Shown here: positions 2,644-53,252 of the stretch, piece after piece | How positions within the stretch are numbered: the first letter of the stretch is position 1 | Layout of the letters: each line of letters begins with the position of its first letter | DNA from: Oopsacas minuta | Taxonomy: Eukaryota > Animalia > Porifera | NCBI GenBank assembly: GCA_024704765.1 | Contig: JAKMXF010000066.1 | Coordinates: 689,854 to 753,853 of the forward strand | DNA length: 64,000 nt | Direction of reading: 5' to 3' | Translations under genes and position numbers: made by a program | Notes under the pieces: generated by a model | Told to the model about the DNA's origin: nothing | Database searches by the model: none | Seen by the model: only the letters and a program-made list of their open reading frames with translations

Positions 2644-3858
2644 TTGTCTCAGTGAACTGTGAAGATCCTTTCCTTACACCAGATATGTAGCTTGTCGCAG
2701 GAGCAGATGACCCATAATGCATTGGTGTCTTAGGAAGTACACTCTTACCGGTTTGTATAGGTTTAGTTTGGGTGTGAGAATCCCCTGAGTCTGCATGGTC
2801 TGGACTCATTTCTGGGATTGGTTCAAATTGGAACACACTAGCGTTGGGGGAAGGAAGGTGTGGAGATGAAACTAGAAGAGCACATAAATACATGAATATA
2901 TGAACAAATTTAATAGAATCTGCTTACTAGCTCTTTGGCTTCAGCCTACTGAGGTGACCTGTACTACGGACACTATTGTCACAGAGGTCTTTGGGGTCAT
3001 TTTAACAGGTCCTACTATAATTTAATTACAATCTGGATAGTTAGGCTACTTACCCTCGGAAAGAGATTCTTCGTTAGTACACTTAAGGTCGATAGCAAGC
3101 TCAGCATATCTAAAAGCCATTTCATCGATAGAAGCGATTAGTGATGTGTATATTCCTACAAAAGAGCTGGGAATAGGAGTATTCAAGTCACGTGATACTC
3201 TATTCACAACTTCAGCTGCCCAAGGAATCTATAGAAATGTTTAAAATAATACACGTATGTAGTGAAAAGGTGTGAAATATACTACAACCTTGGTGGTATG
3301 TATATTTTGGCTGAATTAAAAAAATTTTAGAGTACAAATAAGTTCTAACCTTCAGATTCATAATCAGCTGTTCGACTAACAACACTACATCGTCTGTCAG
3401 CCTGGTATATTGAAGAACTGAATGACTGTCGATGCAAAGAAGCGCCTGAAATTGGAGGACACAATTATAGAGAGAGATTCCTCACATTTAAAAACAGTCA
3501 ACTCCGGTTATATCTAACACGATATACCCGCTTATATTGAAATACAAAATCGTACAAATATGGTCCCAAACCATCACAGTAACATACTTCACCGAGTTAT
3601 ATCAAAGCAGTTATCACGGTTCATTGAGCTTCGATAAAAGGGAAATAGATTGTATGCAGAAAATATTGCTGAGTAGCTTACTTGTGATCCAATCTGTAAT
3701 CTCCGTAAATGCTCAAGTTCTTCACAGGAAATATAAGCTGAGAGGTTTTGGAGAGCAAATTGGACAACAAATAATATTTGTTTGGGATATGTAAGACTCT
3801 CAAGGATAGATAAACACAATTTTGTACACAAATCTCTTGGATTAAACTCTTCTAATAT
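2644..3858 (-). CDS. ZFYVE26: ZFYVE26 pre-FYVE exons 3682-3858, 3350-3445, 3054-3228, 2644-2871
   Basis: All four join in frame through GT-AG introns (phases 0, 0, 1); they match the human LEQLLMNMKVDW...RYAEKALD region followed by a Ser/Pro-rich linker. Confidence 0.8.
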
Positions 3859-6800
3859 CTAAAATAAGAATTGTAAGTCAGTGTTTTTCCAACTTTTTAA
3901 TTTATGGAGATGGACCCTCCTTTAACACATTCTGTTGTGGTAAAGATAATTATTAAAATAATTTAATCAGGTAGATAAATTTCCATTCTATCAGCTGTTT
4001 CTCTAATCAAACCACCACAGCATATGAAGAATGAATTTACAAATACAATAGCATAATTAGCTATGGTAATAACTGGAATTATAGGTAGTTCACCTAAAAT
4101 ATCTTTGTAGCAATAGGAGACTGCAGTAGTATAAATAGAAGAAAAGGCAGCACGAGAATATATATATATAACTAACAGCTAAAGATGTCTACAGATTACT
4201 TTTCAGATGCAAGTGAGAACTATAACAATAATTCGAACTGTTCATTCGTTAAAAAGTGCAAAAAATGTACTATTATAAGTGAGCCAGGTGACGTTACAAC
4301 AAAAGTTGGCAATTTCATTAAACTGTCAACAATCATAACTTCTCCCAACCCTAGCTATCAATGGTACGACGGCTCAGGAAGGCCAATACCTAACAAAACG
4401 CAGAGTACACTATTCATCGGCCCTGTTAAAGAAGAGGATTTCGGCTTTTACAAACTAGAAATAATCGATAGAACTACTGGAGAGAAAAAATACACTAGTT
4501 GGGTGGAGGTTAAAAAATGCGAACAAACTTTCTATCCAACGAAGCCAAGAGTAACTGTAACACCACGAGGAGGTTTATTCAGAAGGGGGGATACAGTGAG
4601 ACTATACGGATCATTTGAAAACGCTGTATACTACCAATGGTATAAAGACGGACACATGATTGAGGGATGTACCAACACTAATTTAAGTATTAGAAGTTGT
4701 AACAGTAGTAGTTCAGGAAGATACGTGCTGATGGCTTGGAACACCTTTGGCACTGAAACAACACAAGAAGTGGATGTGATGATACGGTAAAGGATATATA
4801 GTCAATGGACAAAAGTATTCGACCACACAAATATATTGTCATAAATGGTATACTCTTTCCCGCTCCTATGTATTGTATAGTCTATATTCGTGGCTGCAAT
4901 CTAGTAATTTGCATAGAATAACATATGTTTTTCAAGAGAATATTTTCGATTTACACTTTTTGAAGGTGTTAATTATTAATAATTATTAGATAATTATTGA
5001 CAGTCAAAATATGTGGTAATTCAAAACCTATTAAGAATCTGCAAGTTCTGACTTTGATATTTGAATTCTACGTAGGCGAGTTACCTCAGATTTAAATTTC
5101 CAATGGAATTGAACTATTTTTACCAAAGTTATAGAAGAATTTCAATTTGTGCCACTTGAGCCACCTTTTGCCCATGATGGCACAAGTGGCCGTTACCAAG
5201 AGGTTATTTTGTAATTCAAGGGTTAGCATAGTCATATCATTCGAAAATATTACTCTGACTTATTCCTCCTAACCCTAGTTCATTTCCTTATAGTGGCGCT
5301 TTTTCTGCCGCCTGTGCCACTTTTTTCAAAAAGTGGCTCAAGTGGCACAAATTGAAATTCTTCTATAACTTTGGTAAAAATAGTTCAATTCCATTGGAAA
5401 TTTAAATCTGAGGTAACTCGCCTACGTAGAATTCAAATATCAAAGTCAGAACTTGCAGATTCTTAATAGGTTTTGAATTACCACATATTTTGACTGTCAA
5501 TAATTATCTAATAATTATTAATAATTAACACCTTCAAAAAGTGTAAATCGAAAATATTCTCTTGAAAAACATATGTTATTCTATGCAAATTACTAGATTG
5601 CAGCCACGAATATAGACTATACAATACATAGGAGCGGGAAAGAGTATACATTTATGACAATATATTTGTGTGGTCGAATACTTTTGTCCATTGACTATAT
5701 ATGAATTCAAACTTTTAAATATCAATCATAATTGTTCAGGTACTTGCTGCTTAAAGGAATCTACATTAATCGTACAGCCCCAAGGAGGAACATTCCAGAA
5801 AGGTGAGACGATAAATCTGACAGCTCATTTTATGAATGCGAGATATTATCAATGGTATAAAGATGGTGAGATCTTATCAGGGTGTGAGGAAATACTTTAG
5901 TAATACACGGAAATGTAACTGAGAATACTGGAGAACTCATGATAGTTGCTTCTAACGACAGTAAGGCTACCGCTAAAACAACTGTAAAATACAGATAGTG
6001 TCATCTTAGAAATAAACATAAAAATATAATCAAAACTTAACAAATTAATTATTTAAATACCAATATTTTGTTAATAATCACCTCTCTGTCTTATTATTAA
6101 TCTTTATTGTAGTCTGTAATTAAATAAAACTGGAATGTATAAATCCTCCAAACTAATAATATTCGATTGAAATTCAAAATACAGTTTTGTGAAAATGATT
6201 TTGCTTTCTGGATTAGTAATTAGGATGGAACCTCGTTAATATCAACAGGATTAATAATCTTGTGATATTTATGGTTATACTTTCATCACAAACAGAATTT
6301 CAGTTCCTTTTGTGTTCTAAATATAACTCAGAAACAAATTCAGTTCATCTTTTGTTTTGAAAAGATGATAACCTTAAACTTGGGACTAAAATAGAGAAGG
6401 AAGTATTAATTGAATAATATTTCTAGCGTGCTAAATATAACTCATGGGTCCTTTGAATAGAAATAGGAGCAATTGTATACGCTCTATAATGAAAGAAGAA
6501 TTTGAAAAACCCAGAAATGCATTACCGATAAGGTATTACTATTACATCCAAGAAATAGATTACTTACTTCTGGAATATGATCACATTAGTTGGAATAAGA
6601 TTGGGAATATGATCACATTAGTTGGAATAAGATTGGGAATATGATCACATTAGTTGGAATAAGATTGGGAATATGATCACATTAGTTGAATAAGATTGGG
6701 AATATGATCACATTAGTTGGAATAAGATTGGGAATATGATCACATTAGTTGGAATAAGATTGGGAATATGACCAAATTTGGCTAAGAAAATTGACTAAAA

Positions 6801-9800
6801 TTGTTGTTTCCTTTCGAGGATATTTATAAATTGAATTATCAATATTTGCTTACAATCAAATTGTAAATATGTTATCATTTTCTAGGCAGATTACAAGTGT
6901 ACTATCTTAAATCGACAAAGAATTGTGATATTCAATTTTCACACCTTTTCAGCTCTCTAATTCATAATCATCCGATATAAATTCCCAAAATACAAATTGT
7001 ATAACTTTTCTTATGATTAATACTCTACAAATCATTTTCGGGGTTTAAAAAGTGTCCGTACAGATATAATATGATGTGGCTGTACTCTCCATAAACATGT
7101 CAGTATACATATATTAATACAATGCATTATCAAATATTGTATCATATGGTATTATCACTAAGAGATGCCCTTGGCATGGATGATGTTGGTAAGTCCGTAC
7201 GCGTGGTCCAATTGAAGATAGATACGCAGCTCGGATTATATAATTCATCAGATGAATATATTATCACACCTTTTTGTTGTTTAAAGCTAAACCAATCAGA
7301 TAGAAGATTAAATATTATATCATATCTTGACACGATCCGAGGCGCCACCAGTCTGTACGCTGGACATTCTTCTAGGTGACAAATGTCTTGACCTATCAGA
7401 ATAGGAAGTTGACACAGTTAGTGAAGGCTTCGGGAGACACGGACTATTATCCTCGATATGAAAACAATTTGTTGTAGAGTCAACTTTAATAAATACAATA
7501 AAGATACAATTCAACAAATAAATTGCATAACAGTTCTTTGATCGGCTAATTGAACCCAATTAGATAGAATATGTCTACCGTAATCGTCAGAAGCTAGACA
7601 TCTGTAATAACCAAAACTGTCCTTTTTAATTGGGGCAAATAATAAATATTGCCTCGTTTCTCCTGATAAAGGCATTCCTCTTTCATTATACCATTGATAA
7701 CGTATATTAACACCTGTGGCATGTACGAATATATTCTCAAAGTCACCAACACGTCCACAAGCAGGTTTAGGCTCAATCACAAAGACAGGGGGAGCGTGTT
7801 CAAGAGAAGATATGTCCACTAGCTCAATCCAACTCGATAGTAAGTGATCTCCGTAATAATCTTGAATTCTAACTCGATAGAATCCGAAATCTTCCTTCTT
7901 CAAAGGGCCTAATGAAAGAAAAGGTTTGCTAGCTCCTTGAATATTCAAACCATTTTGTCTGTACCATTGATATGTTAATCTTAAACCTGTTGCTTCAACC
8001 TTAAACACTACATTATCACCGTATGATGCATTCTGAGATTGTGGCTCTGATAATATTATCAAGTCGTTATGCATTTTCTTGTATAACTCGTATGAAATTT
8101 CAAAAGATTGTTTAGAGTGAAAGTGTATTGTGATTTGTTGTAATAGATTTATTCGCTATTATATATATTGTAGGGAAAGTGTATGATGTAATCTTTAATG
8201 TAAACAAATCGAAAGCATCTATGTTGTATCTACACGAATTGAAACGAATCAAAATAAGAGATAAAGATGTTGTTAATAAAGGTAGAATGGTATGTAACAT
8301 TTTAGTGAATGCTTGAAATACAAAGGGATGAGATCAATTATCGTTCGAGCAATAGCTGCCAAGCCTGCATGATGGTCCATGGATGTTTCATGCCTCACAA
8401 AGCCATATGCATGAATGCATTTTCTTTAGGACATGGCAATTACAGAGGTTATAGACGAATGAAAACTGCCAAACGAAAGTGAAATTATCAACAATCGAAC
8501 AATTAACATTAAAGATGATGATACATGCAAGATGCAATAAAAGTATACTTTTATGCTTAATGAATTGTTCCTTACAACGGTGTTTACCGTATTTATATTG
8601 CTTAACAGACAAATAGTCTGCCACTAACAGAGTTTAGGAAAGTACTCTGATTCACAAGCAATCATATTTTCCAAAAGTTTCTAAAATGCTAAATTTAGAT
8701 TCTCTAAAGTTTCGTGAAATATAGTAATGATATAATTCATGTAGAGAAGTCAATTAGAATGAAAGTGAAGGTGATTCCAATGTTTAGAATATGCCTATAT
8801 AAAGGAGTTTCGAATAGGAAAGTTTCAAAAGAGATAATTCCTAAAATACAATAATGAACCCAATACCAAATTACTTGATAATATTATCAGAGCCACAATC
8901 TCAGAATGCATCATACGGTGATAATGTAGTGTTTAAGGTTGAAGCAACAGGTTTAAGATTAACATATCAATGGTACAGACAAAATGGTTTGAATATTCAA
9001 GGAGCTAGCAAACCTTTTCTTTCATTAGGCCCTTTGAAGAAGGAAGATTTCGGATTCTATCGAGTTAGAATTCAAGATTATTACGGAGATCACTTACTAT
9101 CGAGTTGGATTGAACTAGTGGACATATCTTCTCTTGAACACGCTCCCCCTGTCTTTGTGATTGAGCCTAAACCTGCTTGTGGACGTGTTGGTGACTTTGA
9201 GAATATATTCGTACATGCCACAGGTGTTAATATACGTTATCAATGGTATAATGAAAGAGGAATGCCTTTATCAGGAGAAACGAGGCAATATTTATTATTT
9301 GCCCCAATTAAAAAGGACAGTTTTGGTTATTACAGATGTCTAGCAAGTGATAAGTTCGGTAGACAAATTCTAAGTTGTTGGTTGCATTTAGCTCATCAAT
9401 AATCGAAGAAAATTATATTATTAATCATATGTATGTATATGAGTATAACTTTATCACTTCAATCACCATTAAATCTTTATTATAAATAAAGTGTCAAAAT
9501 GAGATAATTTATAATTTTAGTTCTTAACGATCTGCTTCGCTTGCTCGCGCTGTGTGGCTTGCTAACAGTTTGTGTTCGCATGGGACTCGGCACTTCGTGC
9601 CTAGAATTTAGCAAAGTATAAAGTTGCAAAATGATATTTCAATAGATTGAATTTACACTTATTAACGTCAGTCAATTGCAATTCAATTAAAAAGTCCAGT
9701 TTTTTCCAAAAATTTGTGCAACTTTGCGGTTGCAAAAATATTACTTAATACCAAAGAATCAATGGCTAAATAAAACTGAAAATATAACACTATGTATAAG

Positions 9801-12800
9801 GAATGCATACATAGGGTGAGGACAGCTGTCTATACATATGTTATGTCCATTTGCAAATCGCTATTGACAAAATCGACATAACAAATATATGTAGAACCAC
9901 ATAATCAATACTAATGTAGTAGTGTGAACGTATTATCGTAAACAATTTGCATAAGAACTACATAATACTGAAACATTGCAATGTACGCATGAAGTGTTTC
10001 CTTCAATATATATTATAAATATATCTGTAAAAAATTGAATGAAGGCTAATATGCAAAATAGTAATTACAAAGCTACGTATAGTTTCAAAATTAGCCATCA
10101 AAAATTTTTTTTGCTTCCAAGTTTTGTAACAATGAAAGCAATTCAAAGTATTACTATCAGTTTACGTAAAATTTGTTAAATTTCAAACCCGATGCAAAAA
10201 TCTTTATTACAAACAATACAAACAAACATATTACTATATACATATGCGCATATACTATTAACAAGCAACACAACATCGTGATATTAAAAGGAAAGAAGCT
10301 AGTGAGGAAGACACAAATACGCTCTCTGATCACAGTGCTAATGCTAACAGGGATTATTAATATTTGACAATCATAACTGTGATTATTATAATAAAATGCA
10401 GGACTATTTAACAATGTGTGATGCGAGCTATGTGTCGAATATAATAATTATACCCAGAAATTAGCAAGCTGTCTATTAATGGGTTTTTAATGGTTTATAG
10501 TTTTCTAGATATTCTGGTGGCTGTTCAGAACTAAACTCCAAGAATGCTTGCCTGGCCATTTCCCTTAGCTTATCATTTCCAGCCCGTATTTTAAGATAAC
10601 TTTCTTCAAGGGTCTGCTCTCTAGAGACGAATTCACTTCCATGCTGAGTGACTATCTCATCGAAAGGTAACTTTCGGGAGTGAAGTTGATTTGAAGTTAG
10701 AGGATGAGAATATGAAGAAATCAGTAATGGATCAGGTCTCTTTTCGCATAGCTGCAATATAGACCATTTTGTTCTGAGATGAAACCCATAATAATCCCTT
10801 GCTACTAATCTGTATTGATAGTTTAAATGAGCTGAAGTAACAGGTCCAATCGTCAATGTTTCTTTGAACTCATTCATCAATACTTGGATAGCCCCTTTAG
10901 AGAGCACTTCCCAGTAAAACACAAGATTTACGCCAGTTAATACCGGAGAAATTGTGACGTAACTCCCAATATTACAATAGTAGACAAGATCTGCTTCTAT
11001 TTCCACTTTTGGCCTCTCGGGTCGAGAGTACTCACCACGAAAATTATCAGAATGCATTAAGGAGAGTATAAATCAAAATACAGTAGAAATCGGGTTTTTG
11101 GCAATTTCTTTCCACGAGAAATGAAGACAAAAATAAACTTAGTTAAGGTAATGTATTGAAACATCTCCCGCATCATAATATATAGGCTGGGATGTTTCAA
11201 TGTATTAGAGTAGGATAATAACAAAAGTTCAGTTTGTGTGATACAAATTACGGTTACCCATTTAGACAATTCGACTGCTATGGATATATTATTTTATGAA
11301 TGTTCAAAGGCATAATAAACAATACATTACTTACCAGATGAGCTGTGGAGTAATCAGGTTCTTGCATTGTGAAAAGGAACAAAATATGATCACGTGCAAT
11401 ATGCTAGAAAAATGGTAAAATATTGAATACAGTAGCTAATATTAAAACTTCTAATTTTTGCAATATCTCTACAACTCTGAGATGTGACAAGAATTCGCAA
11501 GTCGAGCAGGGCAACATAGTGAAAGTATATGTAACTGTGATGTTAACATGCTAGATTTTCACTTTGAATAGTAACTGGAACTGAAAGTAAAACACATTTC
11601 AAATTACATTAATAATGATATAATGAATTGAAAGTATCCGTAATTGCCACATAATAGTGTCAGTTATATTTTTAAAGGTAAACTGAAAGCCCTACCGCTG
11701 ATATTATTAGATAAAGAATAATACATGCAAAACCTTATAAAGATAAAATGAGACAGAATCTTAGGTGTCTTGGCTAGAGCTAATATATTTAATTCTATTA
11801 AAATATAACACCAAATTGGTGGATGTGGATCACAAACAGCTTGTTAAGCATTTTAATTGGGATAATTTAGAGAAAACCCGATATCCTCGTTCATAATACA
11901 GTGGAACCTACTTAACGACCACATTGGGCCAGTCCCTTCGGTAGCCGTTATTGACATGTTTGACTGTAATAACATTTAGAATGTTAAAATATGTAAGAAT
12001 GGTTCGTGTTGCTTGCGCTACCCGGCTTGTGAACTCAGAGATTCACTTAGATATTCGAAATACTTCCGAGAAATACAATATTGAAGATACGTGCCAATTT
12101 CTTGTATGGCAGTCCTTAACAATTTCTCAATCAACTCTGCGCAAACGAAACTACAGTTGAATTTATCAAGTAAACAAATATGACAACAATTAGTAAACAA
12201 AACTGACAAAACCTACCAAATATATAGGATCAGGGACGTTGTGTATTTTTCCCCATCTCTTGGCTAGTTGAAATTCTCCTTTTCTAGACAAATGCCTTAC
12301 AAGAATTTGAGGCATTCTTTGAGTTTGTTTCTTAATATCTCTCCAATGTTTCCATTCTATACATCCTCCTATTTTTACAGATTCTTCATTGCTTAATTGA
12401 TTTACATCTGGTCGGATAAGTGTGTTCATTATCTATAATAAAAAATAGTAATACAAAATCTCAAATCACTCAAAAATATACAAAGATTACCTCGGAATAA
12501 ACTTTAATTTTCTCCAGCTGGTTATGGAGTCTTTGTTTCAAACTCGACTCTCCAATCAAATTCGAATAAGCATGCTGAAGGATATTCAAACACAATTGGG
12601 TATCATTCCATTCATATATAATATCCATTACAATCTCCCCAAGCAATTCAAAGTTAGTTAGCTGCATTAGAAACTTGAATGATTCTTCACTCGACGCAGG
12701 AGCGCGCGTGTGTTCAAATTCCTCAATTTTTTCGCGTTGTCGACGTATATAATTAATACACCCAATCAGAATCAAGTCTTTTATCTGTTTATACCATTGA

Positions 12801-18800: not shown

Positions 18801-21800
18801 AATCTTCAACTTTGGTGAGACTGAATTCATTCTCATCATATTCGGTGTTATAGTTTTCGTTCTACTCGTATTGCTTATCCTGATATTCATAGTAATCTTG
18901 TTCTGTTTCTTTACGAAGAGATGGTCATATTCACCCAAACAGATACCTGGGTATAATCCTACAATTGCTGAATTAGACAAGAAGAAAGCCAATGAATCTA
19001 CCGTCATACAAAACCCACTTTCTGACTCAGTAGTATACTCTTCAGAACCCTTCAAAGAGAACAAAGTATCTCCACAGGTGTGATCAGATACTCTCACATC
19101 TGAACTCATAATCACGTCAGCTGATTGTTAAGTTATGTTTTACATTATTCTATTAAGGTGTCTGTTGTAAGTATTTACTTTTGTACATATTTATTCACAT
19201 TTTGTTTATATTCTATTCATATCTATTCTAGGCTTGTAAATATTTCCTTACAATGACTTTGTAAGTAATTTCATATCTTTTGTTGTTGATTAGTGCTAAT
19301 TTGTGTGATAATAAACTGATTTGTATTTACAACACTGATACAATTCCTTAAACACAAACTTACAGAATATTGTTTGATATTAGCAATATTATATTTTAAG
19401 GATATTTGTTCTTACAATAATTCTATAGATGGAACCATAGGAGTAGTATACAGACTATAATAGAATGTTTATGGCATATACAACTTAGGCTCATAATCAG
19501 CTGTTTTACAATCACTCAACTCTGATTGAATCGATACCAGTAAAACGGAATTAATCTGTATGTACATATGTGTGTGTGTAGTATATGTTTATGTTTGTAT
19601 GTTTAGAATTGATTGAAGGAACTGGAAGACCTACAGGGCTGATTTTAGGGTACAGGTGTATTATGGGTCTAGAACTAATGAGTATTAACATACACCAACA
19701 AAGTAGATACATGAGTGTATTCAAATCAGTTTATCCATTACAAGATACTGTACAAGGAAATACGAGCCTCAATACAGAGATTCAATTTCAAAGTACTGGC
19801 TATGCTTGGGTGAAATGCTAAAATCTGATAAGTCAAGAGATTTTGTCACCTATCCGAGAGAGTTTTAGTTCAGATATTTGAAAGAGCCTTTGATGTAGCA
19901 TATTTCATAGATATGCCAAATCTCAAGTTTGTAGCTCTTACTTATTCTTCAATAAACTCAGACAAAAAAGTTTCAGTAATAATTGTATATTCAACAGGTC
20001 AACCAATATTCATATCAGAAACCTTATATTCATAATTAACAGGAAATTCCTTTAGAAATGGAGAGGAATGTGATTGAATATTCAGCTGAACCTTGGCTCC
20101 GAATAAAATATGAATAATCTATATTCCATAAAAGTGAATGAAAGTATGTAGATTTGTATTTCCAGCAATAGATCGACGAGTAAACTCTATGAACCCTAAC
20201 AGATGTACGTTCTATCGCTAAATAAACGCATTGAATATGTTAACTCCATAAATAGAGATTTCTAACCACCAACAAGATAGTGCAGTTGTTCAGGTCTATT
20301 CATTCCAGAAACTTACTGTAATACAACTCATGAATATGGAAATACATGATATATCCCAGAAGATCGTAACTATTATTATAATCTCCCTATTAAATACACA
20401 GAACCAATATTCCTGGGGTATAGAACCTAGTAGCACTCGCTACAATGAACTTAGGAGAAAGTAGAAGAATATTCTCTTACGCAACATATGAATAATATCT
20501 AATATACAAATTCTCAGAAAATGTATTAGGTCAAAGTATTTGTATAATTACATAAGATCATTGAAGTTAGTTTTTGCTGTTTGTATTCACTGGAATTTTT
20601 GTAAATTCTCACAAAATATAGGAGAAGTAAATCAATAAACTCTGACTTTATCCAAAATATTAAACTTAAAAGTGGAAATCCACCTTTGATTCAAGAGGAG
20701 CATCTCTAGAACCATTGAAAGATAATGAAGTAGCTCCACAAATTGGAACAGATATCTAGAACTCTGAAGTGTGAATCCAATCAACTGATTATTGATGTAA
20801 CATAAGAATTAGTTTGTCTGTTGTATATCTACTTGTCTTAGTATTTACTTTACTATTGTCTATTACCCAATATAAATAATCCAGGTCAGTAGCTATGTGT
20901 TACAATAACTTTGGTAGTCATTATGTATCAGTAAAACTACATATAAGATAATAATAAATGAATCTTTGGAATTTGAAGTATATTTGAGGAAGAAAAGTTG
21001 ATCAGATTGAAAACAGCTGTCCAAATTACAATCCTAGATATTTCAATAAGGTTATCAGAAAGAAAATAAGATTCTGTTGAATATACAAAACTAATAATAC
21101 CATGTGAATTCCAAATATACTTTCACAACTACAAAACAGTTATCCTTCTTCAAATACAAAATACTTTTCAAATATTCTACATGTGTTCACACTATGCCTG
21201 TAGAATATACAAATACAATTCATACTAGGATATAATATAAATTAAGAGAGGGGTAGACAAAGTACAAACATTCCTGCAACTTCTAAGATGATATCAACTA
21301 ACAAGGTAATTATCCTTATAATACTNNNNNNNNNNNNNNNNNNNNNNNNNNNNNNNNNNNNNNNNNNNNNNNNNNNNNNNNNNNNNNNNNNNNNNNNNNN
21401 NNNNNNNNNNNNNNNNNNNNNNNNNNNNNNNNNNNNNNNNNNNNNNNNNNNNNNNNNNNNNNNNNNNNNNNNNNNNNNNNNNNNNNNNNNNNNNNNNNNN
21501 NNNNNNNNNNNNNNNNNNNNNNNNNNNNNNNNNNNNNNNNNNNNNNNNNNNNNNNNNNNNNNNNNNNNNNNNNNNNNNNNNNNNNNNNNNNNNNNNNNNN
21601 NNNNNNNNNNNNNNNNNNNNNNNNNNNNNNNNNNNNNNNNNNNNNNNNNNNNNNNNNNNNNNNNNNNNNNNNNNNNNNNNNNNNNNNNNNNNNNNNNNNN
21701 NNNNNNNNNNNNNNNNNNNNNNNNNNNNNNNNNNNNNNNNNNNNNNNNNNNNNNNNNNNNNNNNNNNNNNNNNNNNNNNNNNNNNNNNNNNNNNNNNNNN

Positions 21801-24800
21801 NNNNNNNNNNNNNNNNNNNNNNNNNNNNNNNNNNNNNNNNNNNNNNNNNNNNNNNNNNNNNNNNNNNNNNNNNNNNNNNNNNNNNNNNNNNNNNNNNNNN
21901 NNNNNNNNNNNNNNNNNNNNNNNNNNNNNNNNNNNNNNNNNNNNNNNNNNNNNNNNNNNNNNNNNNNNNNNNNNNNNNNNNNNNNNNNNNNNNNNNNNNN
22001 NNNNNNNNNNNNNNNNNNNNNNNNNNNNNNNNNNNNNNNNNNNNNNNNNNNNNNNNNNNNNNNNNNNNNNNNNNNNNNNNNNNNNNNNNNNNNNNNNNNN
22101 NNNNNNNNNNNNNNNNNNNNNNNNNNNNNNNNNNNNNNNNNNNNNNNNNNNNNNNNNNNNNNNNNNNNNNNNNNNNNNNNNNNNNNNNNNNNNNNNNNNN
22201 NNNNNNNNNNNNNNNNNNNNNNNNNNNNNNNNNNNNNNNNNNNNNNNNCTATTCATATATTCAGTGTTCTTGTTGAGTAAGAATCAATAATTATGGTACA
22301 AACCTCAATTATTTCATTAACATAGATATTATTCTTGTAGTTAGGTTTTGTCTCAATAATCATAAAATATCTTAGTTTATTAGCTGATTACTATCAATAC
22401 TGTATTTGGATTATCACTGACTTGTGAATTAGAATAATTCTTAAAGTTCAAATACTAGTAATTGCTAAAAGCATTCCGTCTGCACAGATTAAGAGAGATA
22501 CTTTTCTATCGCTTTAAATATTATAGGAAAACGAACAATACGGATTAAGCATGATTCTCCCACAATTTTGAAATTTGTTAACTTTATGTACCCAAAAGTA
22601 AACAAATATTTACAATATGTTGTTTACACACACACAATAATGATTTAATAATATCAATAATTATCTATGTCAGGTTACACTTGCGTTAATTAAATTAGAA
22701 TGAATCAACAAATATTTATTGTTTGGCTAATTACTTACGTGTAATTATTGTTTTGCTTATTCTATGTATATCTCTGAATTCTAGGAAATGTGAATAATAT
22801 GAACGAAGTAATATTAATTGCAATTAACAAGAGTTTCTTACGAATTCGATGGAAGTTCTACATTTTGACGTATGTCTTAGTGTTCGTATTATAGATTAGA
22901 GAATACTCGTAGATTTGCTCCAATATCTTTCAAAGTGGTTTTAGTCACGAAATACGAAATTAGAGGGTATGAAGGAATGCCAGAGGCACAGCAGACCCAA
23001 AGTGTATTTTAGTGGGACATTGGGCTATCAGTCAGTACCTGGCCTACCAAAAATAGAGACAAATAAGCATAAAGGAGGGGAGTATATTTCTGACAAATAA
23101 TAACATCAAAACACTTACTTGACTATTCCAAGTTGTCCAATATAATAACAGGTTTGTATGAAGAAGCAAAGCATTGTAGTCACCCCAAAAATAGAGAGAT
23201 CTTCATTTCTCTTTTTCATTAGAACAGATTGACAAATAGCTGCGTGAATATTTAGCGCATTGACAATGTTTACATAAAATATGATCTTGTTTTCATCATT
23301 AGCTAGTAGGAGTAAGTCAATTGTATGTAATGTCTCTAATAATTCTTCAAATTCAATATACTGTGGGTGTGATGCACACTCTGAAAGATATTCAAATCCT
23401 AGAAATTGATCTTCTTCCTGTAGCCGTTCTAAATTTAGATAACTTAAGGACACCCTTGGATGGGAAAACAGTCAAACTTGTCTATAACGGCCACGGAAGG
23501 GACTGGACAAGAGTAGCCGTTATGTACAGATGGCGGTTAAGCAAGCTTGCCTGTAATCACTAATGTATACCGTAACCAGGGATTATAGTATTCTATAATG
23601 AATCAACATTTCCCTAATGTGCTTCTATAACGTTGAAAAAGTAACAAATTCTTTTCTTAGTTACCCCGTTAGCATTTCGCCACACCCCTCAGTGAGGGAG
23701 GCGATGATCGAAGAGGTGTTTCTGGTATTTAATGTTTTCAATAAACAAGTCAGTATAATTCAGTTTAATAGTACAAACATCATAGTATGATTACCAGCTC
23801 ATCATTGATTACATTATTCATTGTAGGTATGTATAAATTACATTTGTGGCTTAGAAGTTTAATTGAACTCAGTGGTGAGTGTATATACCGCAGTATAATA
23901 GTGACATATGTATATTTATACTACCATATATGGAAGTAAAATAATAACAAAATAATAGTATTATTACCGTTCATAATGACTAATGCTTTAGTAATAATAG
24001 TCTCAGATAGAGTTAGGAGAGATTCTACTGTATCTATATTCCCACAATTCGGTCTGTTAATTGGATTGAGGGTAGGAGAGCATCGAGCAAGGAAGGGGAA
24101 GGCTAAATATAAGATAATAATAATACAAACACTCTTTAATAAGCCAATCAAATTACAGCCTCAGTAAGGTGTTATAAACCATATCCAATTCAGTCTATAT
24201 AAGATTGGTGAACCCTCAAATCTGATAGGTTAAGACATTTTGTTACCTATCCCAGAGAGTTTGAGAGACATTGGTCATAAATTGAAATCGGTTCCTATAT
24301 TTGTCACATGTCACACACATGCCAAATTTCCAGTTTGTAGCTCTCACCAGTTACTCAATAACAGAGTTACATAATAATCATTGACGTTTTCAACACGAGG
24401 GAATCCTCAAGATGGGACACTGGACCAACCAGAATTTGTACTCCAGATCAACTGCCGACAAAGTCCTAAATTCTAATCAGGTCTAGTATTATACATATGT
24501 TTTCAAGTATAATCCAGACCTGAATAAGAAAATCTGTAAACTATACAAAAACTTTGATAACAGTATTTGGCCATGGAAAGTCTAATATTACAAAAGTAAA
24601 TTACCTCAAAGTCCAAAGTAATAACTAACTTTCGGTAAATTACCTGATTATTATAAATCAACAACAGACAACAACAATGATTTTAGCATCCATTTTTACT
24701 CATAATTTTTCCAGTGCATTTAATGATTACTAAAATACAGTAAGAGTTTGTTATATTCCAGAAACAACATTAAATCACCTCGCGTGTTATGGCATCAGTA

Positions 24801-35700: not shown

Positions 35701-38700
35701 GATTAGTATAAATACAGGAAATACAGTCAAAAGAATAAAGTGAGATAATAAAAACAACAAAATAAAGTTTCAAGAAAAATGACAACTTTAACATTTGATT
35801 ATGAACAAAAATTGAATATTTCCAAAGCAATATTAGTTGAGAACTATCATATACGTGCGGAGAAGACAAGCTTTTTAAACTTAATACACAAAGATCGTGT
35901 TTATTCCGTCACTATTAATGAGTTTAACAAAATCATTAACCGAGAGTGTTTTACTGACATAGAACGAGCTTATATACGGGAACAGAGGAAAAAAGCCGTG
36001 AACAGGAAAGCAGCGAGAGTATCAAGGAAACGCAGACGAGATGAAGATCAATCTCTAGAAAAAACACTCAGAAATCTTCAATCGATAAAATATGGACTTT
36101 TGGAACGAAAAGATATATTGGAAAATGAAATACATTTCTACAAACAAGGCTGTGAACAGATGAGGTATATGGAGTATCATCAAGGCAATATTGTACATAA
36201 CTCTACACCATATGGGTTGATGGGGTATCCTTGCAATTGAATTTATGTAATCAATGTATATCAGATATTTTTCAGATAATTGCTAAGTAATAAAAGAAAT
36301 GCTCATTGAGTCTACATCAATACAAATACAATAAAGTGCTAATTACATTACAAACACTCCACCAGAACGAATTGTATGCATTTATGCCTAATTGTAAAAC
36401 CTTACAATCTAATTGGGCTAAAATACAGATGTGCCAAAATGTGTTAATTATACACATATGTCAGGTGCACATCTAGATGTTACTACGAGTATACATACAA
36501 AATTTGGTGTCTTAATCTCTAAAGGTGTGATCAGCAGAGCGAAAACACAAAAAAATGTAAATAATATATCAGTGTTGAGCATGTCAAAGAATTGAATTTA
36601 AGCCAATCAATTTACACTCTCAGAAAGGTGTTAAGAAGCACTACTTGCACATTCAATTGAACCAATAGAATATCAGCCTATACTTACTGGATAAACCCTC
36701 AAATCTGATTGGGCTATACATTTGTCGTCAGATGTATAAATATATTAAATCTGAAAATATGTTGTTTTTGTTTTCGATAAAATATACTTAGACATCCTAC
36801 TGGACTATGGATGTAATTCAATTTTGTATAGCAACGCGGCTATCGCTCATAACACAACAACACCCTTGGGAGTAGCAAATATGTTCATATAACCGGTGTC
36901 CTTAGAGCGATACGCATTGTACATCATTATAGAGCTAGAATTATCATGGACAATATATGTTGTATAAAATAATTCTAACTTAATTAGAATAAACTTGACA
37001 TCCAAATAAGGAGTTATGTAATTGTATATGTGCGCTACTACAGTAAACTTGTGATAGTCGCACTAGAGAAAAGGTCAAATCATTCACACTTAATTAAATA
37101 CAAATCACATTAAGATAATATGCATTAAAATTCATTTTTACAAAATTTCCAAGCCAATTCCAATTTAGATGCTAAATTTACTAGAAATAAACTGGAATGA
37201 TAATTAAATCAATAAATATTCTGAAACTATTCACATATTCACCAACACTTCTGTTGTATATCAAGAAGCAATAAGTACAGTAGCTTGTACTTGACCATTG
37301 ATAAACATTATGACTTGCTGCATGTGGTTATTGTGTAATTGCTCAATTGAAAGTACAAACTATTATCAGTAGCTTTAATTCATTGTTGACAAATATTTGA
37401 ATAACATAGCTATTGTATATGTGTATTAAGCATATGGTTAAATATAAATAAATTCACAGATTAATATGTACAAGTATGCTTGCTTGTGCTGGACGGCTTC
37501 GTGCCTAGGAAGGTCTACTGAGAAAATACATATCAATGATTAAAACGACTCAATATAGTGCTTTCATATAACTCTTTACTCGTTACTATTATGTATTATT
37601 AATGCAGTCCTATAGGGAGATGCCCTTTCGCATAGGTGAAGAGTGAAGCACGTTCGTCGTTCGAGGTGTCCTGAGAAATTCAGCGGGCCAATTTACATGA
37701 AAATTGGTACATGGGTATATTTTGGGGTGTAGATATGCACTTCGGGTATAGAATTTGTTCAATGTGGATATTTTCATAGTTAAAGTTTGAGCAAACAGAT
37801 TGTAGACTTTTGACATTATAGGATACTCCCATTTCTAACCCAAATAATCTAACATCAACTCTAAAATCTGAAAGGTCAAGACATCTCGTCACTTATCTCA
37901 GAGAGTTGTGGAGATATCGCTTAGATATTAGAAACCAAATTTCAAGTCAGTAGCTCTTACCATTAAGATATTGAATACCGGTAGAAGTTCCAAACGCTTA
38001 CACTTATACATAACACTATTTTGGAAAAATCCAAATATGTAAAAATATTTAGAATTTATTCTAGAACAAATAATCGCTGACTATACTTATACTAAGTTCA
38101 AGTTAAGATATTTAGCAGACAGCACAGATATCTCATATTTCTAAAATTGAAAGTAAGAGCTAAACAGAAGTAGTTTTAACGGACAATTGAATATCGGCCC
38201 CGAAACTAATAATTGGTAACTAACAATAATTATTGAAACCCCCTAAGATAATTCCAGAAAATATTACTAATCAAAATCTCAAAAACAAGATACAGGATAT
38301 GACTTACTGTACTGACTATATTATAGTAAAAATGGTATAATTTACAGCTGACTAACAGTATACGGAATATATTACTGAATTATAGTTGATAACTTGATGA
38401 TATAATAAATTCGAGGTCAGACAATTCGCAACTGTACGCCATTCGGTCACAATTCTTGATCAAATAGAAACCGACACATTTATGCCAATTTCATTCTTTT
38501 ATCCCTCAAAATAATAGTTGACATTTACAGCGAGATCATTTCTCGTTATTTCTGAGTATTAGACTCTTGGAAATAGTGTCTCATCTTGTCTTTGAAAATT
38601 CTAACAACTTCAAAATCAAAATAGTTAAGCTCATTAAAGAATACAAATTATGTTACTGTATAAGCATCAGAGATGGAACCGGTCGGGTCGGGTCGGGTCG

Positions 38701-41700
38701 GGTCGGGTCGGGTCGGGTACCGGTCGAAGATCTCGACCGGCCGGTCATAATTTCTGAATATGGTAAATCTGAATTTGATACTGTAATCATATTGACCAAA
38801 AACTTCAACTTAGCAGTTCGATTAAACTAGACTATAAATAAAAATTTCATACATTTTTTGAATAAATATTTATTCATCAACCTAGAGCAAAAGAGATTTT
38901 CTACTTTCTGCTATATCCACAGAATATTCAACATATTTTCGCCGTGTGTCACTTGTGTCACAAGTGGCAGGGTGTTCCAATACTTTTGGCCAGGCAGTGT
39001 ATAGTCAAAGTTACTAGTCGACCGGTCGACCGGGTCGGGTCATGAAAAAGCTGACCGGTTCCATCTCTGATAAGCATTATTATTATTTAATGGGTAATTA
39101 AACAGCAAGCAGAATACAACACAAGCAATAATTAAACCAGTAGCCAGCGTTTATACAAGTGGTTTAGAAATTAAATATATCACCAAAGAAAGCATCAAAT
39201 GCATCAAATTGTGTATTTTCAATTTCTCCCTGTTCTAGCATACTTTTATAAGACTCTATTTCTGATATTAATCTCATTCTTTCTTCTGAGAGAGACGATT
39301 TCTCTGATTCAAGTTTCCCCAAGTCAGAAGTAAGAGTCGAATCTTCTGTTTTTCTACGTCTACGTGACACACCGGCGGCGCGTCTATTAACACACTTTCT
39401 CCGCTCCTCTCGGATATACGCACGTTCATTGTCATTAAAACAGTGACTATATATTATTTTATCAAATTGAGTGATTGTAACATCCTTGACTCGATTGCGA
39501 TCGATCAGGGTTAGAAATTCATACGTCTGTGAAAGTTCCAGACAATTATCCACAAGAATTGGGTATGCAACTTGAATTTTGATAGAACACATTTTGACAA
39601 AAATATTTATTCTCTTAATCTGTTTGTTTGTTTGTTTGTTATTGTTATTTTGGAAACTATCATTCATATATATACTAACTGGAGAAATTTTGAATAATCC
39701 CTCTGGAAATTGAAAATATCGATGCTGTGTATACAAATAACTTTAACAACTAACTCGAACTAAGCAGCTTATTCAAACACCTGAAAATCTTCATTTATGG
39801 ATAATAATGCTCTGTATTAATATACAGACAGAAACTGATGCATGAATAACTAAAATTGTGGCCCAAGCGATTGGGGGTCACAGATATTTTCAGGTATTCT
39901 AAGATTCATCCGAACTGATGAGAACTGCAATTTACAAATGCAAAAATATGATCAATAAGCTATAACTCAATTAGCTAAATCAACTACAAAATGGAATAGA
40001 GACTAAGCGTACATATTTTCATATCTAAGTTTGATTATATTCAAGTGAAATAAGCTGTTTACAAAGAAAATTAGTAATCTGGAAATTATCTAAAAGTAAG
40101 AAAGCTACAGACATTTTGGCGTATAAGGACAACCGAAAATAAGAGAAAACTGAAAGTAAAAATTGGAATTTTGAGGTAAATATATTCGCACGCCAAAAAT
40201 GTTTTCAGAAGTTATTAAGGGACTGGTAAGAGTTACAAACATGAAAGTTGGTACATTTATGGAATGTGATACATGCAGTATCGTGTCCCAATTATTAATA
40301 CATATCTCAACTAATCTTTGAGATATGTGACAAAATGAATGACCTATCAGATCTGAGGGTTGACTCAGTATATTTAATACAAATACATTTCAGTGCTAAT
40401 TAAATTACAAACACCTCCACCAGAACTAATTTTATGCATTTATGGCTAATTGTAAACCCTACAATCTGATTAGGCTAAAATACACAGGTGTGAAAAGCCG
40501 TGAAAATATACACATATGTCAGGTGCACAACTGGATGTCACTACGAGTACATATGCCAAATTTGGTGTCTCAATCTTTAAAGGTGTGAACATATATACAT
40601 ATATACTAATTTTAGAACTGAGACACTATCTGTAATAGTAACACTTGCAACTCACCAATACATCCTCTAATGCATGAGTTTTGTGATAAAACGCGTGTAG
40701 AAATATATTATTCCACTTTAGATCTCTTTTCTCAACTAACAAAGAATTCTTAAATAGAAAATCAAACTCTTTGTACTGACTTTCAAACTGCAATGCTTCT
40801 ACCTCAGAAAATACACGAATAAGATCTGGCGTATTTCTCCCAATTATTGAATTATAAGTTAGTTCCCTCTTCAAACCAAATTCTTCAGCTTGAAGCAGTT
40901 TTAGGAACAAATTCCCAACTCTGAGTTTTGATTGATAAACAGAAGGAGGATCAAAAACACCTAAATAAACAACAACAATAAAGCTTAATAGAGTCAACAT
41001 GTTAATCGGAACAACACCTATATTCCGTCTATCGGGTCAGAATAGCCTGGTCCGGATGTGACCCTATGAAGCGGAGTCTATTGTTTACTGAAATAAGCAC
41101 ATTAAATATTTCTCGCATAAACTATATACCGTAAACTGGGGCTACTTTGGCCCAAATATCAAAGTTTCAAAGAAACTAGATTAGATTCAGTATTATACTT
41201 GAATATGACTTGCCAAACTTTCAAATATCGGTAGACAAATTCGAATACAAATACAATATCTATTCGATACGTAAGCAAATTTTAATATTTGAGTTAAAAC
41301 AAACCCAGTGGGCCAAAGTAGCCCCAGTTTACGGTACAAATAATCATCTCTTAGAGAGTAATAAAATAGGATTGAGGTTGGTAATTCTAGTACATATGTT
41401 ACTTTTCAGTGCAACAGTATATTGTGTATGCGTAATCATATCAAGGAGATGAAACTCAGGAATAATATTATTCAGCAGAAATGTATCTATCATATATCAA
41501 GTCGATATAATCTGTAATAGGGAAAGGTGATGGCAGCTAATAAACTGACATAACCAATCAACAGTCCCAGAAGGTGTTAAGAATGAATACAGTCACAACA
41601 TGAATACTTAAATCTGATTGGTCGACACATTTTGGCGCCTTTTCTAAGACGCATGTGAAAAATTTTGTTAGATAATAGCAATCATGCTTACATATATTAT

Positions 41701-47111: not shown

Positions 47112-47545
47112 TTGCTCATAAAGATCTTTCTCTGAATTGCTCTCCTCGCTATTGCTTATTATTGTCGATTTTATGCCCCCGTATAGTGAATTATTTATAA
47201 GATGAATTGTCTCGAGAAATATTTTTCGGAAAGAGGACACTCTGACCTACATTTTTGCAATTTTGAGCATATAAAACAGACTTGTATTTTCGAGATATGG
47301 CTATGATAAGTGGTTGAGCCACAAGCAATTGTGGTGGTCAGACATTTTGTTCAAGGGGCTCTTAATTGCGCTGATTATTATGCTCGAAAATCAAGCAAAT
47401 TCACTGAAACAGAATAAGGTTATGATATGCTAAATATCTGCAATAAATATGAGGCTATATTCTAAACTGTAGGCACTACTTATATACTTGCATTACAGAA
47501 TCATAAGGCATATTAGAGTGCTAATTGTGACATTATTTAGTAAGA

Positions 47546-49015
47546 ATGAGGGTAATTTTGGTACTGGATCAAAGGAAATTTGAAGTTGAAGTATACGCCC
47601 ATGATAAAATAACAACTCTAAGAGGGAAAACTTGCGATAAAACTGGAGCACTGCCATATCAGTTAACTTTCTATCATGTGGGTGAGTTATATTTCATTAA
47701 ACATACAGTTTTAGTGCCTAGGGAGATGCCTGTTCGGACGATGTACGTGTTTGACGGCCAAACCACCGTGTTCGCTGTCCTGAGAATTCAGTGGACCTAT
47801 TGACGTGAAAATTGGTATATGTATTCATTATGGAGTGTACATGTGAGCCTTAGGTATAGAATTCATAAAAGTCATTATTTTCACATCTTTTTGGCACTTA
47901 AAACTTGGCCAATCCTAGGGCATAAACTAGCATTGAGGCAGAGGAAGCAGTTGCCCCCTCGCTTTTTCGGGCATCGCCTCATTTACCTATTGTAATAGTA
48001 ATTATATTGAGACGAATATCCATCCTTGCCTCCTCGCTCTGATCAGATTGAAGGCTTTCGTATTTATCTGTTTACATCTTATACATTGTAAGCCTTGGAA
48101 TTTGATTGTCCTATTTTATTTAGGTCGAATCTTGGATGAGTTTAAAACATTCTCACAGGAAAATATCATAAAAGAAGCGACTATTCAGGTTATGCGAACA
48201 CAAACTTTGGGGCAATTTCTCGACCTAGCAGTTGTGTCCCAAATTAATCCTGCCTTGAAGAATTACATAAGAATTGAAGAAGGCAGAAGTGTTAGGTTTT
48301 TGAAAGAAAAAATATATGAATGTTTTAAGTGTCATCCAGATAAGCAAAACTTAAATGCTATTAACGAGAAAAAACCGCAAAGCATAACATATATGTCAGA
48401 TGAAAGAGGCCTTTGGGAATTCGATCTTGATCATAATTACAAAATATTCGTTTATTACGACTTTGAAGGCACAATTACTTTCAAACACAGAGTTTCATCA
48501 GATATCTACAAAATAAAAATCAAGTCAAACAGTACTATAAGGCAGATTAAAGATAAGATTCGTGATGAATTGCTTATCGGGACTGTTACTGAGATCTATA
48601 ATCAAAATAATGTAAAGCTGAATAATGACACTACAATAGGTGATAACCAAATAACACCAGCTGATATGCTCCAATTCGAATTATTAGGTTTGTTTACTGT
48701 TTATTTATTAGATGTCAAAGGAGTTAAACAAAATCTTACGTATTAGATAACCATAATATCCTTAGTAACAATGGATGTTAATACCCAAAATTATTTAGTA
48801 TACGAATGATAATCGTGAACATTCTGTAGGAGATTTTCCTGATCATAGAAAGCCACAGCAGCCGGGAATCCCTGTTTATCCTCTACCAATGCCAAGACAG
48901 AAGATTCCTATGATGAGAGATGATCCAGATCATTATCCTGATAAGAGAGATGAAAATTATGCACATTATAACATTCCTCATCAACCACCACCACTACCAC
49001 ATCAACAACAGCATC

Positions 49016-49052
<37 letters not shown>

Positions 49053-50507
49053 TTATCAGCCAGGGCCACAACATTATCAACAGGATTACAAATATCATCA
49101 AGAACAGAGGCATCCATATAATAAAAATCCAAACGGACAATTTGAAAAATCAGGTCAACACGATCAATTCCAGCCAAAAGCACCAGAAGCACATCCCCGT
49201 GACCAAAATGAACCAATACGCAAACAAGATGTTGAGAAACAACGGTCATTGAGTAATATCCATGAGGTGTATGATCACAAAAGGGGACCATTCTTGCCCC
49301 TCAAGAATGATGAATGGTTTAGAGGTGAGTATTTGGTAACTTTGTCCAAATATTTTTCCTTTTATTGAGCGATATCGACTTGAATATTGTATGTATTTTC
49401 ATGATCTAAAATAATGTATATAATACAGGTTATACTTACAATCCTACAACAGATGAGCCTATTTATCAACGTGTTGACAGAAGACAATATCCTGAACATA
49501 GACCTAATCCTAATCCTAATCCTGTGTACGCTACACTACCACCTGGACAACTACCACCACGACCAGTAGGAAGAGGAGGTGTGTATTTCTTTGTATATTT
49601 TCTCTGTTTCGATAACATGGGTTCCATACCCTAGTTAAGTTGGGGTTATTAAACTATGATTTTCCCTCTGTACACGCCATGGGGTGAGGTTATTAAATTC
49701 CTGACCTCACTCATTGTCGTTAGGATATACCTTAATTCTTATCAGGATTAATTACTGTTGTAGACAATAATGATATAATTGAGGGAGTTAATAATAGTAG
49801 AAAATAACTTTTTTATCTTATAATCTAATGAAAGTAATTTGCATTTGAAAGTAATATTTTGATACAAACCATCTGTGTATTAATTATTAGCTCTTTATTG
49901 CAATTTATCCACACACACACGCACCAAATGCTGTGCTTATTGTTATTCTGTGTGTAACAGTTGTTTTTAGTAGTTTTGATCTTTGAATGAGGTTGTTAAT
50001 ATATTCTTATATATTAAAACTTTTGTCAAAAGTATATTGAAGATCTGGTAAGAGCTACAAACTTGAAATATGGCATGTGTGTGGGATGTGATAAATCAAA
50101 GTTGAAATAATAATATTTAACAAAAACCTTCTAAACTGTCTGATAAAAGGTGACAAAATGTTTTGTGAAAATTTTGTAAACTATCCTATAATTCTGTTAA
50201 ATATTTTCATCAATTTGTAGAGGATATGACTGATGGATTTCTCGCTCAAGTGATTATAGCAGCTGAGAAAGAATGGCAACAAATAGGCACAATTCTCTTG
50301 AACGATTTCCCTAAGATTCTCCAGATTATTGATGAACGACAACAGGCCTATACCTCATCAATGTGTGTATTAAGAGAATGGAAAACTCGTTGGCAGACAT
50401 TAGGTCCAAGTTCCAATGTTATGCCTTATAATTATGATTCTCTGATATTTGCACTGGAAAGTGTTGGAAGGAAGGATCTTGTACACAAGTTTTTTCCAAG
50501 GAAATGA
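47546..50507 (+). CDS. 543-aa protein: three tandem ubiquitin-like domains, Gln/Pro-rich linker, C-terminal Death domain (exons 47546-47681, 48124-48687, 48830-49324, 49429-49578, 50221-50507)
   Basis: Four phase-1 GT-AG introns give a 1632-nt open frame; Ubl1 ...QLTFYHVGRILDEFKTFSQENIIKEATIQV; Death domain EWQQIGTILL...MCVLREWK...LIFALESVGRKDL. Confidence 0.85.
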
Positions 50508-52241: not shown

Positions 52242-53252
52242 ATGAATAATATGAAGGTTGTAATCGCCCCCGCAATTTCATATATTGCAACAGGCCGTGA
52301 TATTACGCTGAGACTGATTTCGAGTTTGGAAATAAAACTTGAGAAAAGATGGAATAAAATCGATGAAGAGGGGAACATTTTTGAATTGGATGGACACGAC
52401 GAGGACACTTTGTATGTGGGTCCAATTTCAGAATTCGATTATGGAACTTATTTTTGCGAGGTTCGTGTTACCGGCGAGGATCATTTCTTTAGAACTGAAT
52501 CAGCGAGAGTTTTACGACCAGAAGCAAGGCCAAATGGTGTCCAAAAATCTTTTAATAAATATGGCATTTCTTTGTCAATTTCAACTAGGAATAATCGACT
52601 ACCATCTACGTCGTCCTTGTCACCCGGCGTATCGCCAAGACATCCATACTTCAAGGGATACGCAAACAAACAGCTAAAGAGTACATTTACCTTGACAACG
52701 GAGAGGAATGTAATTACACCGGACCAAGAATTACCAAGAGTATCGGTCGATTCGTCAGATAGTAGTAGCTCATATTGCCCCAGAGAGGATAACTTATCCT
52801 TGTCAGAACTCCCGAAAATCCGGCCGAATCGTATTTTTAGAAGGGACTCTAATCTTTCTTCTGAATCAGACATTTTCCACGAAAATACTCAGTTGACTAG
52901 CACCCCCCTTGGGTGTCCGGAGACACCGGATTGGTCTCTGGGATCCTCTGGGTATGCGATAGCCTCTCCCTCATTGAATGATTCAAATGTATCCAGTCCT
53001 CTACCTAGTCCTATCTCACAATTACGGACTACTTTCTATGAAATGGCCGCTCTCCCGATACGTTCATCTCTCTCACGTCTCTCCACACGATCTGAACAAA
53101 TCTACAGACCGCAATACAATAACGAACACGACTTCCGGTTAGCAGGCTACCAACAAGACTCCCTAAAGACTCCCTCCTTCGATGTAACGCCTAGAAAATC
53201 TCATTTTCGTTTTTCGATAAGATCAACTTCTGACTATAACTCGAATAAATAG
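52242..53252 (+). CDS. N-terminal intracellular Ig domain (same family as the 4-11 kb cluster) plus a Ser/Pro/Arg-rich disordered tail, 336 aa
   Basis: RW.KID...ELDGHDEDTLYVGPISEFDYGTYFCEV; no signal peptide or TM. Confidence 0.85.
   Translation: MNNMKVVIAPAISYIATGRDITLRLISSLEIKLEKRWNKIDEEGNIFELDGHDEDTLYVGPISEFDYGTYFCEVRVTGEDHFFRTESARVLRPEARPNGVQKSFNKYGISLSISTRNNRLPSTSSLSPGVSPRHPYFKGYANKQLKSTFTLTTERNVITPDQELPRVSVDSSDSSSSYCPREDNLSLSELPKIRPNRIFRRDSNLSSESDIFHENTQLTSTPLGCPETPDWSLGSSGYAIASPSLNDSNVSSPLPSPISQLRTTFYEMAALPIRSSLSRLSTRSEQIYRPQYNNEHDFRLAGYQQDSLKTPSFDVTPRKSHFRFSIRSTSDYNSNK

Follow-up and report, generated by a model that had tools for sequence, protein, structure and literature searches.

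A glass-sponge gene for a putative adaptor with three tandem ubiquitin-like domains, a proline- and glutamine-rich linker and a probable Death domain

In the innate immunity and cell death pathways of vertebrates and flies, Death-domain oligomers and non-degradative ubiquitin chains cooperate on separate molecules by way of dedicated ligases, and linear ubiquitin chains act as scaffolds that decorate Death-domain signalling complexes. Our study describes a gene of the glass sponge Oopsacas minuta that may hold both elements on one polypeptide, as three tandem ubiquitin-like domains (Ubl1, Ubl2 and Ubl3), a disordered linker and a probable Death domain. It lies within a 64,000 nt stretch of assembly GCA_024704765.1 (contig JAKMXF010000066.1, 689,854-753,853, forward strand), hereafter the window, in which all positions below are counted. 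Among its closest counterparts in architecture are the TRADD-N adaptor proteins, which form expansions in sessile marine invertebrates and have ubiquitin domains among their fused modules (Kaur, Iyer, Burroughs & Aravind 2021, PMC8195603). The supplement of that study lists UBI+Death+UBI+Death+Death+TRADD-N in the starfish Acanthaster and GT4+TRADD-N+UBI+UBI+UBI in the corals Acropora and Orbicella, all uncharacterised (PMC8195603). An earlier note on this DNA had claimed that no characterised protein combines tandem Ubls with a Death domain; we likewise found none in the literature, although the uncharacterised starfish and coral fusions show that the theme was already catalogued. A family of three Ubls, linker and Death domain lacking TRADD-N is absent from the published table, which covers TRADD-N proteins only (PMC8195603), and Pfam scans at E≤10 detected no TRADD-N family in any of the five exons of the sponge gene. 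The particular arrangement of three Ubls, a linker and a single, probable Death domain is new, on a theme of fusion between ubiquitin and death adaptors that is not.

The explanation that we favour, with reasonable though far from complete confidence, is that this single-copy glass-sponge gene encodes a cytosolic adaptor, in which a platform of three Ubls is tethered to a docking Death domain. Its five exons (47546-47681, 48124-48687, 48830-49324, 49429-49578 and 50221-50507, all on the + strand) are separated by GT..AG introns, all of phase 1, and give a spliced length of 1632 nt, or 543 codons and a stop. A script check of junctions and frame bore out this gene model, which the earlier note had proposed as five exons with phase-1 introns encoding 543 aa. 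Four public runs from one sample cover the stretch, three of which resemble genomic DNA; the fourth (X4) is RNA-like in its behaviour, the run type being absent from its record. Summed word depth in X4 was 750-3200 over the exons vs 10-40 over introns 2 and 4. Contigs of X4 carried the joints 47681/48124, 49324/49429 and 49578/50221, and at the remaining junction, 48687/48830, there were loose ends on both sides, in which the sequence past 48688 was that of the beginning of exon 3 and the sequence ahead of 48827 that of the end of exon 2. Because of these three joints and the matching loose ends, each consecutive exon pair is taken to be joined in RNA. The junction check that was to distinguish one gene from separate genes thus favours one gene, with all four junctions supported. 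The gene is real and expressed.

All searches and folds were run exon by exon. Exon 1 (47546-47681, +) contributes the ATG and the N-terminal two thirds of Ubl1 (45 codons and 1 base) and matched Pfam ubiquitin at E 1e-3 over profile positions 5-41 of 72, a partial match, as Ubl1 is split by an intron. The C-terminal third is formed by the 29 residues that open exon 2 (48124-48212, +); these align to ubiquitin residues 48-76 and end in x-G, placing intron 1 at ubiquitin Gly47/Lys48. Ubl2 (86 aa; 48213-48470, +) matched Pfam Ubiquitin_2 with 31.2 bits against a cut-off of 23.1 (E 3.2e-7), lies in register with the next ubiquitin unit and ends in an invariant FEG. Ubl3 (72 aa; 48471-48687, +), which ends in E-L-L and a Gly split by intron 2, also matched ubiquitin: the whole-exon score was 25.2 against a cut-off of 25.4, the best stretch being aa 118-147 of the domain's span at aa 118-187, and Rad60-SLD, Crinkler-N, NPL4-UN and Ubiquitin_4 were also matched in the window and in orthologues. 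Rad60-SLD, Crinkler-N, NPL4-UN and ubiquitin are all beta-grasp families, and each of the three units was found to belong to the ubiquitin-like beta-grasp clan of Pfam. The nearest neighbours of exon 2 by ESM features were tandem-ubiquitin clusters. Furthermore, a profile of four orthologous exon-2 sequences matched polyubiquitin in the PDB (E 4e-19), with profile positions 1-149 in register with residues 48-186 of the ubiquitin chain, or two and a half units. The units therefore follow one another head to tail, at the periodicity of ubiquitin and with no spacer between them, as in linear tri-ubiquitin. The Pfam matches and the polyubiquitin alignment uphold the three Ubls of the earlier note.

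The same note had read the phase-1 introns as a sign of exon shuffling, to which the layout lends little weight. Intron 1 cuts through Ubl1, Ubl2 and Ubl3 lie wholly within one exon, and the array keeps the polyubiquitin register; the Ubl part therefore resembles an array of the polyubiquitin type that has degenerated, rather than a set of shuffled single-domain exons. Only the C-terminal domain forms a one-exon module behind a phase-1 intron. When the three units were compared with each other, no significant pairwise alignment was obtained, and such divergence suggests that the triplication is old. Mean identity among orthologues was 70% for Ubl3, 65% for Ubl2 and 51% for the tail of Ubl1. 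Across 12 orthologous sequences the first junction reads x-G, the second an invariant FEG-T and the third E-L/I-L plus the Gly split by intron 2; the single Gly of the first junction was kept in 11/11 sequences covering it, with a variable residue before it. None of the junctions in the 12 sequences contains di-Gly or RLRGG, in agreement with the earlier statement that no Ubl ends in a free di-Gly. The array is therefore not cleavable or conjugatable in the usual manner of ubiquitin, and is predicted to stay in one piece. It has neither the di-Gly processing site of a conjugatable modifier nor the near-identical repeats of a polyubiquitin precursor. In the polyubiquitin profile alignment the Ile44 position of Ubl2 has no conserved hydrophobic residue, and a hand alignment placed Tyr at this position in Ubl1 and Ubl3 and showed the tail residues R72/R74 to be lost. 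The likeness to a ubiquitin chain is thus one of topology, not of recognition surface.

Exon 5 (50221-50507, +) encodes 94 aa and the stop codon and is most probably a Death domain, a call that draws on Pfam matches in two orthologues, on ESM-feature neighbours and on the make-up of the Foldseek lists. In an alignment of nine copies, 38 columns were invariant, and with 56-82% identity among orthologues this was the best-conserved part of the protein. Two orthologues matched Pfam Death in the same register: the copy at locus L003 with 20.2 bits (E 6.5e-4), residues 16-91 aligning to positions 16-82 of a profile of 86, and that at L008 with 13 bits (E 0.11). The other 7/9 orthologous copies had no Pfam match, and no competing family appeared in any. 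By ESM features, 29/30 neighbours of exon 5 were Death clusters, the top score being 0.91 with 190 shared features. Several results weigh against this assignment. The window copy itself matched nothing in Pfam at E≤10, every Death match fell below the gathering score of 22.6 bits, and PDB sequence searches with exon 5 alone and with profiles of 3 and 9 sequences returned no Death chain and no match at all. The predicted fold spoke for neither side: two AlphaFold2 models, built from alignments of 3 sequences each, were poor. The one with the window copy first had a predicted local distance difference test (pLDDT) score of 76.6 and fused helices 1-3 into one long helix; the one with L003 first (pLDDT 59) had six helices of the expected lengths without a packed fold. 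The models were searched with Foldseek against the PDB, by a wide VIA-align run and a VIA second look, and against the ESM Atlas, and neither gave a significant or compact death-fold structural match by Foldseek/PDB, VIA-align or ESM Atlas. Both Foldseek lists were insignificant, yet crowded at the top by Death domains (ankyrin, RIPK1, RAIDD, TRADD, FADD, TNFR1, DR3, p84 and p75NTR); with TM-scores of ~0.25, this crowding appears to reflect sequence-level rather than fold-level similarity. Of the complete Death domain in the earlier note, what stands is a 94-residue helical domain, conserved in its own right, to which two orthologues and the ESM neighbours give a probable Death identity, whereas the window copy lacks a Pfam match and the scores stay under threshold.

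Between the array and exon 5 lies a proline- and glutamine-rich linker of ~215 residues. Exon 3 (48830-49324, +), predicted to be disordered, is rich in Q (20%), P (15%) and H (9%), contains a poly-Q/H stretch at about 48973-49062 and ends in a conserved ...PF...D/E-W-F/Y; exon 4 (49429-49578, +), joined on both sides in X4, is 24% P and opens with a conserved TYNPT. Together these form one conserved island at the exon 3/4 junction (...PF...D/E-W-F/Y, then TYNPT...), whose TYNPT part is conserved in L003, L004, L006, L007, L008 and L010. The L003 and L004 counterparts of the linker are P/Q-rich in the same place and show little sequence similarity. The earlier note had suggested that the Q-rich linker aids condensation. 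Since the linker is proline-rich and fast-evolving outside the island, it would be better read as a flexible tether that carries a single short docking motif than as a driver of condensation. A TRAF-type or NPxY-type motif in the island was considered and dropped, as the candidate residues are not conserved between orthologues.

Relatives of the gene were sought in several collections. An exhaustive HMMER search of exon 2 against 1.84 billion representatives returned three proteins at E≤1e-3, two of which were orthologous, exon-sized open reading frames (ORFs) and the third a marginal, unrelated tandem-Ubl protein. A word-index search with the orthologue profile returned 11 different orthologous ORFs, each of them in an ENA assembly, and one with exon 5 and its profile a single relative, P0004. 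Neither the HMMER nor the word-index searches found sequence relatives outside sponge-derived assemblies, a scan of JGI metagenomes with the exon-5 profile found nothing, and no paralogues were found within the window. As far as can be detected, the family is therefore restricted to glass sponges. Contigs were fetched from seven assemblies, of which six had long contigs (loci L003-L010), while that of L001 did not extend as far as exon 5. In the six long-contig assemblies exon 1 is followed by exon 2, the linker and exon 5, and L003 and L004 share the intron positions and phases of the window. An FGGY kinase lies downstream of the gene in the window, L004, L005, L007, L008 and L009, and an ORF of ~625 aa is also downstream in the window, L004, L005 and L008. 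Non-synonymous divergence (dN) was 0.16-0.42 with synonymous sites saturated; the ratio to synonymous divergence (dN/dS), where computable, was lower in the C-terminal exon (0.06) than in the Ubl exon (0.13-0.16). These comparisons indicate a gene under purifying selection and conserved in glass sponges. In one species (assembly ERZ25069837), the complete Ubl-linker-Death gene was present in three or more tandem copies, among which two diverged types of C-terminus occur (L010 10055-19786; L007 6820-13390); we interpret this as a tandem expansion specific to that lineage, the gene being otherwise single-copy.

In the adaptor explanation, the Death domain would dock the protein onto homotypic Death-domain oligomers and so gather there a permanent platform, like polyubiquitin but proof against deubiquitinases. 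This platform might then recruit ubiquitin- or Ubl-binding factors, by which a signal would be passed on or the complex sent to the proteasome or p97, with the linker as the flexible tether between the Ubl array and the Death domain. The link from death-fold signalosomes to the proteasome, p97 or E3 ligases that the earlier note envisaged is likewise hypothetical. A stronger version is doubtful: the protein would be a deubiquitinase-proof mimic of linear tri-ubiquitin tethered to a Death domain, which on polymerising would display a ready-made 'chain' to chain readers without a chain-building ligase. Rather unlikely, too, is a role as a negative regulator or degradation shuttle, in which the Ubls would bind proteasome receptors and the Death domain capture Death proteins, so that parts of the signalosome are turned over and no signal is propagated. 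Ubls of the Rad23 and ubiquilin type do bind proteasome receptors, and integral, non-conjugatable Ubls joined to a cargo-binding type of domain across a long flexible linker would suit a shuttle; indeed, this role fits all the results shown. However, any proteasome-binding surface is putative, the Ile44-patch positions are altered, and three Ubls exceed the need of known shuttles.

The remaining alternatives concern the identity of the parts. Were the C-terminal domain some other small helical domain, the protein with its three Ubls would lose its link to death-fold signalling. The sub-threshold Death scores, the unmatched window copy, the empty PDB sequence searches and the two models lacking a significant structural match all point that way, but the sole Pfam family to appear is Death, with two matches that share one near full-length register, Death clusters make up 29/30 of the ESM neighbours and Death domains dominate two independent Foldseek lists, so that we regard this as quite unlikely. 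It is very improbable that the array is a precursor of Ubl modifiers, cut after a single Gly to release units that are conjugated to targets. Cleavage after a single Gly is known from the UFM1 and ATG8 precursors, and every Ubl end keeps a strictly conserved Gly; the array nevertheless lacks di-Gly and RLRGG, the residue in front of the Gly is variable at junction 1, the Ubls are too different for pairwise alignment, and conserved downstream domains point to a function as one polypeptide. Finally, a Ubl gene and a neighbouring Death gene could have been wrongly fused in the gene model. The exon chain is backed by short contigs without full-length reads, which places one full-length molecule beyond proof from X4 and counts against our explanation, and X4 depth is moderate 5' of exon 1. 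Such a merger is nonetheless extremely improbable, as X4 joins every consecutive exon pair, the frame is kept across all junctions, six other assemblies with long contigs keep the exon order and spacing, L003 and L004 share positions and phases, and the tandem copies duplicate the entire Ubl-linker-Death unit.

A loose end at 47539 in one X4 contig concerns the 5' end of the gene: here 19 non-genomic letters (TCTTCATAAAAAAACTTAC) join an acceptor AG (47539-40) 5 nt before the ATG. This leader joining site and the 5-nt 5' untranslated region (UTR) occupy 47539-47545 (+). The first ATG past the acceptor is that at 47546, and the L003 and L004 orthologues share this start position. The 19-mer was not found in the 64-kb window at ≤2 mismatches, nor in the 10 fetched loci. 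Because glass sponges are known to have a trans-spliced leader of ~37 nt (PMC10282587), the 19 nt are likely to be a spliced leader (a candidate 3' end of one) or a distant 5' UTR exon.

Several further observations were made around the gene and its orthologues. Between the gene and the FGGY kinase, the window holds a 336-aa ORF (52242-53252, +) with a serine-rich tail and no Pfam match, and an ORF of 232-331 aa occupies the same position at L004 13778-14476, L007 14544-15533, L008 14634-15629 and L009 17537-18256. The N-terminus of the 336-aa ORF has an 'L-x-I/V-G-P-...-F/Y-G-x-Y' motif in common with the Ig-only genes at 4185-11057. On the short 4.2-kb contig of L001, the same 207-aa Ubl ORF occurs twice in inverted orientation (1290-1913, -; 3110-3733, +), which is probably a palindromic assembly or long-read artefact and not biology. 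Elsewhere in the window, intronless Ig-only genes (4185-4790, 7511-8074 and 8854-9402; Pfam Ig_3, I-set and Ig_2) have no obvious signal peptide, and two of the Ig-only genes are near-identical copies on opposite strands. These Ig_3/I-set genes were considered as functional partners and rejected, there being no link to the Ubl-Death gene beyond position. Two intronless ORFs at 35779-36240 (+) and 39164-39736 (-) have a basic-region motif in common (…AYIREQRKKAVNRKAARVSRKRRR…); L008 and L010, too, have a bZIP ORF upstream of their Ubl-Death gene, by which the conserved synteny is extended. An assembly gap at 21300-22250 (a run of N; 923 in the window) falls within the second copy of an LRR-EGF receptor gene, whose first 12 residues are identical to those of the ORF at 17083. 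The layout as a whole is compact and intron-poor, with nested genes, and fits descriptions of the Aphrocallistes and Oopsacas genomes.

If the tri-ubiquitin mimic were true, the genome of glass sponges would have the polyubiquitin scaffold for death-fold signalling hard-wired into it. More generally, a conserved natural fusion of an apparently uncleavable, polyubiquitin-like array with a Death-type domain in one of the earliest-branching animal groups would be a natural experiment linking both systems. It could serve as a simple reagent with which to find out which factors a permanent ubiquitin-like chain draws to a death-fold assembly, and could show the age of the coupling between ubiquitin and Death domains. 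Even should its role prove mundane, a family well supported by junctions, synteny and purifying selection is added to the poorly annotated immune and death repertoire of glass sponges.

Compared with known systems, the sponge gene resembles the fusions of TRADD-N and ubiquitin in carrying ubiquitin-fold domains, often tandem in those proteins, on one chain with domains of death-pathway adaptors in sessile marine animals. It differs in being mostly single-copy and syntenic and not part of a large lineage-specific expansion. ISG15 and FAT10 also have at least two ubiquitin-fold domains in tandem on one chain, but those proteins end in a free di-Gly and are conjugated, whereas the sponge array lies inside the protein, has no di-Gly and precedes a further ~310 residues. 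With polyubiquitin and Met1-linked chains the array has in common its head-to-tail ubiquitin folds, in register and without spacers; unlike them, its units are highly diverged, with a single Gly per junction and altered Ile44 positions, and it is encoded as what would be a fixed part of an adaptor, neither made by a ligase nor processed from a precursor. The logic of the putative protein is that of the bridging adaptors MyD88, FADD, TRADD and RAIDD, in which a small protein of the cytosol pairs a single Death-type domain at one terminus with a second module that mediates interactions and is not catalytic. In the sponge, however, the Death call is below threshold and its fold putative, and the second module is an array of three Ubls in place of a TIR, DED, CARD or TRADD-N domain.

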